Below are positions 1,358 through 59,678 of a stretch of 64,000 nt of DNA, one piece after another. The position numbers were made by a program, and so were the translations under genes. Source of the stretch: Cercozoa sp. M6MM (taxonomy: Eukaryota > Protista > Endomyxa: Ascetosporea); the NCBI GenBank assembly GCA_040357565.1, contig JBDODJ010000036.1; one strand, written 5' to 3'. Below the pieces are notes generated by a model. The model saw nothing but the letters and a program-made list of their open reading frames with translations, searched no databases and had not been told where the DNA came from. Position 1 is the first letter of the stretch. The number at the start of each line of letters is the position of its first letter.

Positions 1358-1729
1358 TGTTGCCCAGCACTCGCCGCGACGTCTAAGCTCCGTAGATTCG
1401 GCACTGGGAATGCCTCATTTTCAATTCTGCCTTCGGAGTTTCTGTCACCACGCTCCTGATTCTAAACTGCAAAAGAGGCCAGGAGCTGCAAGCGAGCGGC
1501 AACTGAAATGCAAATTAAAAGCAGTCGAAAGTACGAGCGAAAACGGATACTGCAAGTTTATATTATTGTCCAGTACTGTTCGGCTTTGCATTTATGAGAC
1601 ACATAGTCCACTAGAACAGCAAGAAAATATTAGTGCTTCGTGTGAGCAACCCCTATGTCGCCTTCTATGTGTCCACGGTGAGGTTGTTTTGAGTTGTGTG
1701 TCCGCGCGGATTGCTTTTCGAGTTCAGAT

Positions 1730-2594
1730 GCGGTTGTCGTGTACCTCAACGCCCTCACACAGCCGAACCTGTCAAAGCTGATGTCGAAAGACCAAAGCGC
1801 AGTCGCTTGTTTCGATTGTGCCGGTTTCTGTGGCGAGTTGCGACATTGTACGCTTTGTTTTGGCTTTCTCCCCCAAGTGCGACTGGCGCTGTATTTCTGC
1901 ATTCGAGCAGGCTAAGTCTGGCGCACAAAGTGTTCCGGGTCGGAAGACATGTTTTGCTGCTCGCAACAGAAGGGTATGCTTCACCTTTCTCAGCTGTACA
2001 TTGTGTCTGATATTTCTTGGTTCTGCCAGACACGGAGGTACGCTTGGGATAGCTTTGATGCGCACAACCGCGCGGATACAGTTTCTCGCACACCGACTGT
2101 TCGGCTACAAGAAAGTACAGCGTTCGATTGTATCTTTATGTGTTTGGTTTCATTCAAGATACTTTATAATTAGAGTCGCGTGGTGGAGCACATGCTGGAC
2201 AAGAATCTCTCGCTGGCCCTGAACACACTCGAGGTCGCCAAGCGTGTTTCCCAGCAGCAAGCTCATGTGAGATTTCTTTCTTTCTTTTTGCAGGAAAATA
2301 CAGAACGAAAGCTTATGCGACGATGCACAGGTCCCGTCGACATGGCTGCAGCGTATGCAGCATGTGGTGCCGCCGAGTGCTCTCGCCGGCGCCGTCGATG
2401 CCGCGATCCTCGTGCAGCACTGGAGACAGGTCTCGGTACACATCCTTTGCTTGATTTAATTAATTGCTTTAATTGCTTTCGTTGTTGTATTGTGCTGCAA
2501 TCGAATTCTCGCGTAGCTCAAGTGGTCGCGCATCTACGCCTCGGTGCTGCGCACTCTGCGCTTTCTGCTCAACCTGCTGCAGGCTATGTTTTGA
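1730..2594 (+). CDS. Hypothetical spliced protein, weak PEX11-like similarity; 5' end uncertain
   Basis: Joined exons give LSLAHKVFRVGRHV...HMLDKNLSLALNTLEV...ALAGAVDAAILVQHW...LLNLLQAMF-TGA(2592-2594). LSLAxKVFRxG resembles the PEX11 amphipathic helix. Confidence 0.4.
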
Positions 2595-2857
2595 GTTCAG
2601 CTGCAAAAGCTTGCTCAAGCTTCCCACCCAGCGAACACACGTCAAAATCTTCCACACCTCTTGCGGTTTTCGGAAGACTTAAATGGCTTCCGCGCGGACA
2701 CAGTAGAGTATGTTGTACATACGTAGTACGTAATGCTAGAGTAGATCGCACGGCACGGCATCATATAGTACGGTAGCGTGCATGCGCAGACGATCGACGG
2801 ACCAATCGCAGTGATAACGCGATGATTGCAAGATACAAGTCAGTCCTGCGCAGTGAA

Positions 2858-55551: not shown

Positions 55552-56592
55552 TTAACCTGCATATTCGGATTGGGATCCGTGCTTTCGTCGCATTTCGAAC
55601 ACAAGAAGATCTGCGGTGTACAGCAACGTGGAGTTTAGCGCAAGGTATAGTTTAAATACAGAGGGTATACTGTAAATGTACCTGTCCATTGTTGACGAGA
55701 CAGTAGGAACAGCCCCGCCGATACACAAGACAGTCCTCCATGTCACCGACCGGTGGCTGTTCTTGCGTATCAGTGCTGTTGGAATTTGTACGGAGTAGAG
55801 TAACACCCGAGTCGTGGTCGACACACTCGTTTGGCCAGCGGTGTCCCTGGCCACCGGTACTGCCGTGATAGAAGTCAATGCACTCGAAGTACGACTGACA
55901 GAAAGCACCTTTGTTTCCTTCAATTGGGAGAAACTACAACAGCCGGAAGTTTTACTACTCACCTGTCCTGCCTGAGGCGGAGTTGTCGTTGAAGACATCT
56001 GAAATGTGCAAACGGAATTACTTTACAAGAAAGCAGAGGGTCTGAAGCACGCACCATTTCAATAAGGTTGTTGCGACAGTCGAAGACAAAGGTCTGGTAG
56101 GCTTCGCGCGTTCGAGACACCAAGCGCCGACAACTGGACGGAATATTGCGCGGCAGTGGACATCGGTACTGCAGACACGACGGGTAGCCTTCCCACACGC
56201 ACACGCGTTGCGTGCTCCACACGATCTCGCCTGCTTCGGTCACCTGCGCTTTTGTTTCCGTAACCTAGTGCCCCCCAGGGGAAAAAACCAACATGGCAGA
56301 ACGTACATGCGTGTTGCAGCCATCACTCCATATCGCGCAGTGCGGCGGAATAGTGCGGTCAATTTCCTGAAACCGAGAGGGGAACTTGATGACAATAAAC
56401 TGTAAGTTTAGTAATTGCAGGACATTCAAAGAAGAGTCCCTTTTTCACTTTCTGTCGTAATTTCGATACCCAAAACGCAGTGCATCGTTCCGCCGAAGGA
56501 TCAATCTTGTTCATGTCGCAGAAACGCAAAGTGCTGCCAATGGTTTCGCCGGTGCGAGAAATCCACTGGGTGTTGCACCCGTCGTAGAACAT
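55552..56592 (-). CDS. Possible hypothetical spliced gene
   Basis: Successive minus-strand ORF segments with plausible splice sites (56359-56592, 55959-56243, 55552-55998); no motif recognised. Confidence 0.3.
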
Positions 56593-57393
56593 CTAGGTTT
56601 GCAATTGTTTTCTTTTCAGTTCAAACAAAGCGAAAATAAATTCAAATGAACGGAGCGCACCTTGCAACCGCACGGAACGCGTGCTTCAATGTCAATCGAC
56701 AGCGCGCACATTTTCAATGCAGCTCAACGCCAGTGTTGAAACAGCGATCTTGATTGCAGTTGCCAACATTCAGCTCAGTTCCACTTCACGACTTTTCGGG
56801 TTGCACAGCGATCCTCTGAACTTAGGACTGTCCCACAGTGTGACGAGCGACTTTGCACCGCACAATTCAGTCTTTTAATAACCCATTTGGGGTGTCTGAA
56901 TGCGAACTACATCGTTTGTGCCAAATACAGCAACCGAACGGAGCTCAACTGAAGTGAAAGAGTCGACCCTCCGCGCGGATCCCAGTCTTCCTCCAACAAC
57001 TGAGACTTGGCCATTCATTTCTTCCTCCGAGAACGGACTTTCTTACATTTCTTAGTTCTTTAGTATCACTGGCAAAGTACCCTCAATTTACCAAGGTCTG
57101 ATCCCCGCCCTATCTGAGCCGACTGTGGGCGGGGAACGGAACACGCAACTGCACGGGAAAGTTGGCTTTCATGCACACAAACTGTTCAACATTACGTAGT
57201 ACGTATACGTAAAAGCGAAAGAACAATTTCGGTTCTCATTGAACGTCGCGACGCAACACTCGACGACAGCTAAGCAAGCTCCCGTCCGACGACTCGCCGC
57301 GCGTCGCCGTGCCTGCGAGATATCGGAGTCGGACTCTCATTTGTACGTTGCGTAAGTCGAGTGGCGTCGCCGCGACATGAAACGACGCGTGGT

Positions 57394-59678
57394 TTATTGG
57401 TGCTTCTCGAGTCGCAGGCTGAAGCTCACGTAGGGGTAGTAGTCCAACGCGGCACCTACAGAACAACCCAGACATACAGCAATGACATACACAATGGAAG
57501 ATTGATGCATGTGCACGAGCTACCCGAAGCGTCATCGTCGCCGAGACCACCATCCAGGTAGCCAAAGTGTTCCTGGAGACTCTTGCGCACACGCTGCGGG
57601 TACTTACCCGGCTGGGGTAGGGGTAGAATAGATGACAAGGGTAAGTGATAACAAACAGCAAAGAAAACAGTGGTACGTCGATGAGTGCCACAGAGAAATT
57701 CACAGGCAGACCGAAACGCAGCACGGACTCGACAAAGACGCGGACCAACTGCACAGAGTTGGAAGGTTGCGCGCGTGCGTGCGTGCGTGTGTGTGTGTGT
57801 GTGTGTGTGTGTGTGTGTGTGTGTGTGTGTGTGTGTGTGTGTGTGTGTNNNNNNNNNNNNNNNNNNNNNNNNNNNNNNNNNNNNNNNNNNNNNNNNNNNN
57901 NNNNNNNNNNNNNNNNNNNNNNNNNNNNNNNNNNNNNNNNNNNNNNNNACTGTGCATCCGGCCCCGAGGCCGCGCACCTGACAGAAGATACATCCACGCG
58001 GGGGGGGGGGGCTAGCGCAGGGGTAAACTAAAGTACCAGCGCAGCAGAGTTCGCCAAGCACGCTGCAGGTTATCGGTTTGCGTCTCCAGCTCCGTCGATT
58101 CCTTCTCCTACCATATATATACTACATTAGTACTATATAAAGCGGGTAGACAGCAAGATACAGCTTCGGCCGGGTCAAACGTGAAGTTGCGCACGTGGTA
58201 TCGTTCCTGTCGATGAACGGGTGTGTGTGGGGAGGGAGCAGGAACAAAGTCAGCACACCTCACGGAAGGCAGCGCGAACAACGTCGGCGCCCTTCTTCAG
58301 CAGCACCTGGGGAGGGGGTATAAAAGGACAACAGGCTAGCTAAGACACGATACCACTCGGAAGAGAACTGACTCCTCATCGCGTGCGAGTTCCAGTGCTG
58401 ATCCTGGGGGGGGGGGAAAGGAATCAATAGAAGACTAGGAGGATATTACCAGGACACACGATCTGCGGCGGCAATGTCGGCAGCTCTGTAGGAGTTAAAC
58501 TTCATCCGCGCGGACATACAGACAAACACGAAAAAGCGAGGTGCACCTTGACCCTCGCGACGTCGCTTCTCGATGGTTTGTGTCTCGAGCGACTCGTAGT
58601 TGGCAAGGAAGTCCTTTTCTCTGTGCGATACTTTCGGGATAGACAGACCTAGGTTAGAGAGGGGCAGGCACTACCTTTGCAGTGGAACAACAACAACAAA
58701 GGTCGTCAGGTACTCACCCTGCACAGTTATATATATATATATATACTTATGCATGTGTACACACCGACTCGATACAAAGCAACCGACCTCGACAATGTCG
58801 CTCCGTCGCACAACCGTGTACAGTGACCTCACTTGCAAGGAGCCGTTGTGACGACGCTCTAGGGCTGCCACCTGTACCCACACAGGTGAAGGGATGAGGA
58901 GGGGAGACAACAGGTAAAGCCGGCCAACCTCAGACCGCAGCTCGAGGTAGCGCTGCTGCAGCGACCGGAAGGACTCCATGCACTGCTGCGTCGACTGCTG
59001 CAACTGCGCCGCCAACGCCGGCAGCGGCATCTACAAGCGTATATGTGTACAGACACCAAGGTAGTAATATATACATATATATGTATTACATCTATAATAT
59101 ATATATATATATATCAGACAGGGCGTACCTGGGTGGGGAAGCGCTGTCGCTGCCAGCGGAACTGGCGCACGAACTGCTCCTGCGTCTGTCCCTGCACCAT
59201 CAGAGTCGGCGCCGTCTCGCGCAGCTCCGTGTCCGTGTCGCCCTGCAATTGCAGACATGCACACATATACACACCCCCTCCGGTCATGGACAGGGCAGGA
59301 AAGCAGGAGCTACGATGGTTTCGTAGTAGGAACGGGCGATCTTCTTGGCCACCGAATCGGCGGTGCTGTCGACCTTTCCGAGTTCGTCGCTGAGCTGCAT
59401 AAGTGCGTCTTGCGTGCCCACACGCAGTTGAGGCACCTATATGGAAGAGGACGCGATATCTTTTGAACATGTACGCGGCCTCTAACGGACCTCAATCGGC
59501 ACACACTCTGCATGTGCATGCTGTTGGACGCATTGCGCCAACTCGGCCTGCTTGGCAGCCTGCCAATCACACACAAAATGAACATATGTCCAACAGCAAC
59601 AACAACAACAAGAAATGATTGCACAGCCGACGACTTCTCGTTCGGCACTGCCACGAACCACAATTCGTTCTGTTGCAT
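57394..59678 (-). CDS. ATP6V1C: V-type proton ATPase subunit C
   Basis: LWFVAVP, VPQLRVGTQDALMQLSDELGKVD, QFRWQRQRFP, GSLQVRSL, EYLTTFVVVVP, FLANYESL, VRVFVESVLRFGLPVNF, DYYPYVSF; one exon interrupted by the N gap at 57849-57948. Confidence 0.93.

Follow-up and report, generated by a model that had tools for sequence, protein, structure and literature searches.

The nuclear genome of Cercozoa sp. M6MM, an intron-rich, aerobic protist, carries a perfect 10-bp palindrome, TCCGCGCGGA, in 2,239 exact copies, about one per 10.5 kb of the 23.6-Mb assembly (GCA_040357565.1; 2,235 contigs). The word came to attention in a 64-kb stretch of contig JBDODJ010000036.1 (C36:30880-94879, hereafter the window), for which an earlier note had reported 13 copies and drawn a comparison with HIP1, the highly iterated palindrome of cyanobacteria. 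We find that TCCGCGCGGA is a real iterated palindrome of the nuclear genome, that its placement is blind to genes, with copies in exons in all three frames, in introns and in spacers, and that the constraint on it acts on the DNA and not on the protein.

Abundance of the palindrome

The window contains 13 exact copies, each where the earlier note had placed it, while 100 dinucleotide-preserving shuffles gave an average of 0.09 and a maximum of 2, in good agreement with the chance expectation of about 0.1 copy given in that note. The GC content that it had assumed, ~55%, was also close to the measured ~54%; that of the genome is 53%. The word is not confined to the window. As a control we counted the reversed word AGGCGCGCCT, which is likewise palindromic and has the same composition; it occurs 33 times in the assembly, so that the excess of TCCGCGCGGA over it is 68-fold genome-wide.

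Statistics of context were taken from the window together with 200 kb of contig C1 (264 kb in all), which provide 26 unbiased sites. An order-3 Markov model predicts ~0.18 sites in this sample (~140-fold enrichment) and an order-5 model, which covers the CGCG and CCGCGG content, ~0.9 (~29-fold). Once tandem repeats are masked, TCCGCGCGGA ranks top among the non-homopolymer 10-mers of the sample, and no other palindrome of 8, 10 or 12 bp is strongly enriched. In the window TCCGC is present 40 times, 13 of which extend to the full TCCGCGCGGA, CCGCGG is present 11 times and TCCGCGGA is absent. Since neither a Markov model, nor confinement to the window, nor shared flanking sequence removes the enrichment, none of the grounds that the earlier note had named for abandoning the motif applies.

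The same note had held that the copies are neither transposon fragments nor artefacts of library or assembly, and this is borne out by their unrelated flanks, by a unique locus, by independent contigs and by gap-free coding alignments (below). Logan contigs, built independently from run X1, the only public DNA run that contains this genome, are identical to the window over positions 21100-27000, a span with three of the copies (23793, 23870 and 25139). The doubled depth of a short contig at the 23793/23870 pair had raised the suspicion of a repeat, which was rejected: nowhere else in the assembly does the 156-bp stretch holding the pair recur. The window has five assembly gaps, each next to a microsatellite, and the nearest copy is 557 bp away, so that the result stands whether or not the sequence is continuous across them. 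As all five sit at microsatellite arrays, they are probably assembly breaks in simple repeats.

Anatomy of the site

Words with at most one mismatch to TCCGCGCGGA number 5,087 genome-wide, and the one-mismatch variants among them 2,848, compared with 887 for the control. This amounts to ~95 copies per variant versus 2,239 exact copies, so that a single mismatch costs ~35-fold in enrichment and the peak is as sharp as had been claimed. The claim that near-copies stand at chance level, on the other hand, does not hold. The window contains seven one-mismatch variants, not five (those at 36429 and 40844 had been overlooked), against ~1.8 expected, a three- to four-fold enrichment that the genome-wide counts confirm. 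Mismatches are spread nearly evenly over the palindrome, with 769 at the outer position pair (control 204), 570 at the second (control 242) and ~1,509 at the three inner pairs together, or ~503 per pair (control ~441, ~147 per pair); the deviations show only a mild excess at the outer letters. The outermost T..A is present on 69% of all CCGCGCGG cores. In the 264-kb sample, no enrichment was found for the half-site and spacing variants TCCGGA, TCCGCGGA and TCCGCGCGCGGA, nor for the look-alike palindromes TCTCGCGAGA and TTCGCGCGAA.

Flanks share little. The dinucleotide Y-G precedes TCCGCGCGGA on 34.6% of 4,478 half-flanks, where 15.5% is expected before TCC, and a purine occupies position +2 in 41 of the 52 sampled half-flanks. 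This soft, symmetric Y-R preference suggests a full site of ~14 bp, Y-R-TCCGCGCGGA-Y-R. Further out, GC and CpG density are at background level and there is no partner motif, and the description of them as unrelated stands, with nothing in common beyond this weak symmetric preference.

Placement relative to genes and constraint on codons

Exon-like DNA was called by a codon model, self-trained from a generic start on DNA masked with Tandem Repeats Finder, and makes up ~30% of the 264-kb sample, in many short blocks. (A longest-open-reading-frame test for coding context was uninformative because the genome is poor in stop codons.) Nine of the 26 sites (35%) lie in exon-like DNA, and all three frames are used: six sites read xTC-CGC-GCG-GAx, two TCC-GCG-CGG and one CCG-CGC-GGA. 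Association with exon borders or 3' splice sites was not significant (4 of 17 sites versus 13% background).

Three copies are firmly coding, one of them in the PP2C exon of the window (below). In the mitochondrial cysteine desulfurase NFS1 the word encodes I-R-A-E inside a gap-free alignment in which the human protein has I-M-K-S, and in 3-ketodihydrosphingosine reductase (KDSR) it encodes S-A-R, again without a gap. The alignments indicate that at these two conserved coding sites the word arose by substitution and not by insertion. A firm non-coding example is a set of three copies, spaced 20 bp apart, which stops ~17 nt short of a pyrimidine tract and CAG; this signal opens a protein-kinase exon starting in the glycine loop. 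In the NFS1 exon (C1 39926-39956) we also observed the double-outer variant GCCGCGCGGC, read as A-A-R-L, 21 bp upstream of the exact word; this variant is mildly enriched (5 sites versus ~0.7-1.5 expected).

Overall codon use is only mildly biased. In exon-like DNA, however, [FLIV]RA[DE] tetrapeptides are encoded by the word in 6 of 12 cases, where codon use predicts ~5%, and SAR peptides in 2 of 5, where it predicts ~0.4%. A use of 40-50% where 0.4-5% is predicted leaves codon or peptide bias insufficient, as the earlier note had argued. A further view of the constraint comes from two genes, on contigs C64 and C364, that contain 15-16 copies each in repeats of 8-9 residues of the type ..VRAE... 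Within these units hardly any variation is seen at the three synonymous positions that the word covers, while the wobble base just after the word may be A, G, T or C (GAA/GAG/GAT/GAC), the base before the word is not constant (GTC/ATC) and the spacer sequences have drifted apart. Alanine is GCG within the word and mostly GCC or GCT elsewhere in the same open reading frames. The frozen synonymous sites, the gene-blind random placement and the origin in situ together argue for a force on the DNA word itself.

Acidic tandem-repeat open reading frames of this kind, with units of 6-9 residues (..VRAEExxDA.., ..xxVRAEVxx.., FRADGD), carry the word in nearly every unit and have both strands open; they were seen at C64:31386-34446 (1053-2174 minus therein), at C364:425-3482 (1359-2216 minus therein) and on C50.

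Spacing and clusters

Copies are spaced at random and not regularly: the 80 gaps measured on four contigs follow an exponential distribution (Kolmogorov-Smirnov p = 0.34; per-contig coefficient of variation ~1), and no regular spacing was detected in this small sample, on which no damped-sine test was run. Most gaps (67 of 80) exceed 1 kb. The sole departure from randomness is an excess of gaps below 100 bp. In the assembly, pairs separated by 1-30 bp number 76 versus ~6 expected, a ~12-fold excess, and there are 17 triples. The start-to-start distance is a multiple of three in 31 of the 50 listed pairs, a result of several different coding tandem repeats (FRADGD, VRAEExxDA, IRADTD and others), and non-coding arrays of the word repeat every 20 or 22 bp. 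The excess would mean either that copies close together provoke duplications locally or that clustering is favoured.

Copies and near-copies in the window

The exon calls of the earlier note are supported for two copies and not for a third. The copies at 48708..48717 and 48846..48855 lie in minus-strand exon-like DNA of a PP2C gene region, the first encoding I-R-A-D in frame xTC CGC GCG GAx and the second, in the PP2C exon, F-R-A-E right after the last conserved strand of the PP2C domain. The codon model scores the copy at 5363..5372, which had been read as S-A-R, as non-coding, and its open reading frame holds an (AC)n run. The intron calls at 32671..32680, flanked by two minus-strand exon-like blocks, and at 43870..43879, flanked by two plus-strand blocks, are probably right, while the third, at 58505..58514, is ambiguous, lying in a weak minus-strand exon-like block. 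Of the copies that had been called intergenic, the one at 2689..2698 is in non-coding-looking DNA ~100 bp past a plus-strand exon-like block, and the one at 56970..56979 is in an exon-poor stretch of ~2.3 kb.

Among the remaining copies, 1701..1710 lies in non-coding-looking DNA between minus-strand and plus-strand exon-like blocks, and 19931..19940, also non-coding-looking, ~28 bp upstream of a minus-strand exon-like block, probably in an intron. The pair 77 bp apart consists of 23793..23802, in a weak and ambiguous minus-strand exon-like block, and 23870..23879, in non-coding-looking DNA. The copy at 25139..25148, of similar context, is contained in one 1.8-kb independent contig without differences. 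The one-mismatch near-copies are ACCGCGCGGA (2067..2076), TCTGCGCGGA (7906..7915), TCCGCGCGGC (12320..12329), GCCGCGCGGA (22917..22926), TCCGCGGGGA (36429..36438), TCCGCGCTGA (40844..40853) and TCCACGCGGA (49041..49050, within the PP2C exon).

A proposed protein reader and a force that would keep the word

The observations allow us to consider how the word might be read and maintained. In the explanation that we favour, a sequence-specific DNA-binding protein, either a homodimer or one with two domains, would recognise TCCGCGCGGA as a symmetric site of 14 bp, made up of a hard 10-bp core flanked on both sides by soft Y-R steps. Copies would arise in place by point substitution and not by insertion, after which they would be kept by a force on the DNA word that takes no account of gene, frame or strand. 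That force could be weak selection for scattered chromosomal sites, or molecular drive, in which repair or gene conversion favours the bound word. We infer the reader from the perfect symmetry, the hard core, the soft symmetric flanks and the lack of half-site enrichment, and the keeping force from the behaviour of the copies. For the combination of a dimeric reader with gene-blind selection or conversion bias at the DNA level, we see the case for and the case against as about evenly balanced.

Several points weigh against it. BEN and Zn2Cys6 domains were not found in the assembly, in searches whose controls are uninformative for these eukaryotic families. The only candidate reader seen is a pair of E2F_TDP matches (43.7 and 22.1 bits), 1.9 kb apart at C21:47610-49570 on the minus strand and the only ones in the assembly. 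The two E2F-type winged-helix domains may form one two-domain (DEL/E2F7-like) protein; the pair is a lead and weak evidence, because E2F sites are normally promoter elements. A typical binding-site weight matrix would also be expected to give a more graded mismatch profile than the nearly even one observed, which also fits the neutral decay of exact copies from a copying process. Random spacing gives no sign of an architectural role. The exon and intron calls come from a crude self-trained codon model, and selection and drive are not separable from one genome.

One version of the conversion branch goes further. TCCGCGCGGA might be a eukaryotic 'selfish word', whose binding protein would tilt mismatch repair or gene conversion in favour of the 10-14 bp site that it binds, so that the word spreads by molecular drive, without DNA methylation, through exons, introns and spacers, and perhaps also seeds the tandem VRAE-type coding repeats. 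We offer this as a speculation that is probably wrong in its full form, and still give it more credit than the alternatives that follow.

Alternative explanations

The earlier note had extended the analogy with HIP1 to a methyltransferase and repair system, and this part is not supported. In the model that Elhai put forward for HIP1, the word is marked by a methyltransferase, and near-copies are turned into copies by a mismatch repair that depends on the methyl mark. Such a drive is consistent with the HIP1-like behaviour of TCCGCGCGGA (PMC4390886) and with the somewhat greater frequency of variants at its outermost position (769 versus 570 and ~503), which Elhai saw for HIP1 as well. Yet six-frame searches of the whole assembly, in which intron-split genes can be missed and whose sensitivity also depends on how complete the assembly is, gave no match to C5-methyltransferases (PF00145), Dam-type enzymes (PF02086), N6_Mtase (PF02384) or Vsr. 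One sub-threshold PF01555 match belongs to a multi-exon Trm11-like tRNA methyltransferase; this gene (C1341:877-3710) has the motifs VGTGS and DPPYG and (CA)n-rich introns. The ratio of observed to expected CpG is 1.04, with no depletion. CpG-transition variants of the word, doubles included, number 870 versus 435 for the control (~2-fold); single transitions are about half of the 870, or ~16% of the one-mismatch variants, where 20% is the neutral share, and are thus neither depleted nor in excess. In the window, the near-copies at 7906 and 49041 are CpG transitions, as had been stated. From the undepleted CpG and the lack of an excess of these variants it follows that there is no decay signature of 5-methylcytosine, nor is there any sign of near-copies being consumed by repair, for they are enriched. 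A contiguous site of 10-14 bp is, moreover, longer than the usual methyltransferase site. 5-Methylcytosine is probably not involved; this verdict concerns that base, and sequence alone cannot judge N4-methylcytosine or N6-methyladenine. Taken together, we regard methylation-linked drive as improbable.

An ordinary transcription-factor site that serves gene regulation, bound for example by an E2F-like or CGCG-box factor on the CGCGCG core, deserves about the same low degree of belief. Palindromic promoter words read by dimeric factors include E2F TTTSGCGCSAAA, the vertebrate TCTCGCGAGA element and the yeast pleiotropic drug response element (PDRE) TCCGCGGA. They resemble TCCGCGCGGA in length, symmetry and CG-rich core; the half-site TCCG/CGGA is that of PDRE, and CGCGCG is the core common to E2F sites. 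A palindrome with soft flanks, the E2F_TDP domains on C21 and the existence of homotypic clusters all suit this explanation. However, those promoter words concentrate in promoters and tolerate variants, whereas TCCGCGCGGA is gene-blind and sharp, losing ~35-fold with one mismatch, and neither a Zn2Cys6 nor a BEN domain was found. Its copies are no rarer in exon-like DNA than random positions are (35% versus 30%), show no bias to borders and occur within conserved enzyme domains, and their surroundings lack CpG or GC enrichment and a partner motif. Within the limits of crude gene models, we saw neither the concentration upstream of genes nor the depletion from coding DNA that mark promoter sites.

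Could the word be what remains of a mobile element or of a templated insertion, a scar or minute insert such as an excision footprint or a miniature inverted-repeat transposable element (MITE) of minimal size? Exact copies with an even decay profile, the excess of close pairs and arrays, and identical dinucleotides on both sides of 6 of the 26 sites (~2.6 expected) would fit. Against this, the NFS1 and KDSR copies lie in gap-free alignments, and a 10-bp addition would shift the frame. The flanks have nothing in common, the pair locus is unique, and the genome sample is very poor in dispersed repeats. Shared flanking sequence and, at the two coding copies, an insertion relative to homologues, which would mark a transposon, MITE or footprint, were not seen. 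A footprint model in which TCCGGA or TCCGCGGA gains a duplicated centre was rejected, as these presumed targets are not depleted relative to the order-3 model. We judge an origin by insertion to be very unlikely.

Still less can be said for an element acting in RNA, in which the self-complementary 10-mer would pair with a second copy in the pre-mRNA and loop out the sequence between them. A palindrome is the same RNA word whichever strand is transcribed, and pairs 20-80 nt apart do occur in likely introns, for instance the three copies before the kinase exon; but for most copies the next one is more than 1 kb away, the soft preference in the flanks is a symmetry of the DNA, and copies are also present in exon-poor stretches. 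Finally, bias of composition, codons or peptides, or an artefact of assembly or library, can practically be dismissed, because although the word is GC-rich in a 53% GC genome and contains no stop codon in any frame, its enrichment survives the order-5 model and the reversed-word control, mild codon use falls far short of the observed word use, the independent Logan contigs carry the three checked copies without differences, and copies keep the reading frames of conserved genes.

Genome setting

The 264-kb sample is almost free of dispersed repeats. The sole family is a ~136-bp element with copies 90-97% identical, found at 8718-8853 of the window and at 30911-31046, 88681-88755, 148413-148469 and 198460-198568 of C1; it could be a short interspersed nuclear element (SINE) or a small RNA gene. 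Simple repeats abound. G-rich minisatellites of the type (GGGGGTAAAGA)n and its variants, with a unit of 11-12 bp, occur very often, mostly in non-coding stretches (for example 18687-18792, 32426-32499, 63406-63510 and 63940-64000 of the window, and 98.9-100.2 kb and 127.6-128.4 kb of C1), and rank among the most over-represented words of the sample. (CA/TG)n and related microsatellites are extremely common, as at 28912-29114, 34192-34262, 41133-41250, 49919-50174 and 57775-57848 of the window. An AT-rich palindrome, GTAAATTTAC, is modestly over-represented in the sample (5 sites versus 0.14 expected), along with TAAATTTA (16 versus 1.45).

The short-exon, short-intron gene structure of the genome is illustrated by the gene for a 2-oxoacid dehydrogenase E2 component (lipoamide acyltransferase) at 36711-38470 of the window, minus strand, which apparently has about nine short exons. 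Close relatives were not found: the best protein match of the PP2C exon has 33% identity and a 755-residue exon has no match. Runs X2 and X3 of the same study are unrelated to this genome.

Comparison with known iterated words

The HIP1-like behaviour proposed in the earlier note, that is, a genome-wide, sequence-specific effect at the DNA level in coding sequence (three frames) and non-coding sequence alike, is supported by our results. Like HIP1, GCGATCGC, and the alternate highly iterated palindromes, TCCGCGCGGA is a perfect palindrome, short and rich in GC, that is present tens to hundreds of times more often than expected (PMC4390886, PMC5861425, PMC13756078), and its enrichment falls within the 15-300-fold range published for HIP1 (PMC5861425). 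Both are scattered in spacers and in genes in all frames, with unrelated flanks; for both, peptide and codon use are insufficient, and for HIP1 the function is still debated. Xu et al. argue for selection for scattered HIP1 sites (PMC5861425), while Elhai's model is a conversion or repair bias toward the word (PMC4390886). The differences are nonetheless clear. The host here is a eukaryotic nuclear genome with introns; the site has a 10-bp core with a soft 14-bp symmetry, where HIP1 has 8 bp; it occurs about once per 10.5 kb, where HIP1 can exceed one per gene; no cognate methyltransferase and no methylation signature were found; and its spacing looks random on four contigs, where HIP1 has been reported as periodic (10-90 kb).

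A second group for comparison is formed by the DNA uptake sequences (DUS) and uptake signal sequences (USS) of Neisseriaceae and Pasteurellaceae, for which drive models have been put forward (PMC2817400, PMC2397512). These too are words of 9-12 bp present in thousands, with a hard core and soft flanks, coding copies in tolerant positions or frames and moderately enriched near-copies, and molecular drive is a serious explanation for them. Unlike TCCGCGCGGA, a perfect palindrome, they are non-palindromic and rely on natural transformation. We know of no such uptake route in this protist, in which no search aimed at the machinery was made, and drive in a eukaryote would have to act in meiotic or mitotic repair.

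When 185,579 prokaryotic genomes and Joint Genome Institute (JGI) metagenomes were searched for the word in pairs and triples, they returned scattered chance matches in GC-rich bacteria and unrelated tandem repeats, and no taxon with the trait. The environmental contigs Ga0115011_10058925 and Ga0163180_10353315 (both marine metagenome) and Ga0307489_10227850 are unrelated and hold the 10-mer inside satellites; one such satellite has a 13/29-bp unit, TCCGCGCGGACCG, with 78% GC and 80 copies in 2.6 kb, and another a 40-bp unit with 52% GC. In the literature, the 10-mer turned up in 27 papers, only in primers or in the human TERT promoter, and we found no link of highly iterated palindromes with eukaryotes. 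The absence of an earlier description, as claimed in the earlier note, is in keeping with this: no report of such a eukaryotic word was found. TCCGCGCGGA is thus apparently the first eukaryotic nuclear case of a HIP-like word.

Until now, hyper-abundant short words such as HIP1, uptake sequences and Chi have belonged to the study of prokaryotes, where it is still disputed whether they arise by selection or by drive. An unambiguous example from a eukaryote would extend this kind of genome-writing force to nuclei. One word, with ~2,200 copies in 23.6 Mb and codons visibly rewritten in conserved enzymes, offers a system for testing mechanism in the presence of meiosis and chromatin. If the word is indeed selfish, it would be a nuclear counterpart of the accumulation of HIP1 or of uptake sequences, without DNA methylation. 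The word is of practical value too: it marks the DNA of this lineage, biases its protein sequences (IRAE, SAR, PRG) and appears to seed coding tandem repeats.

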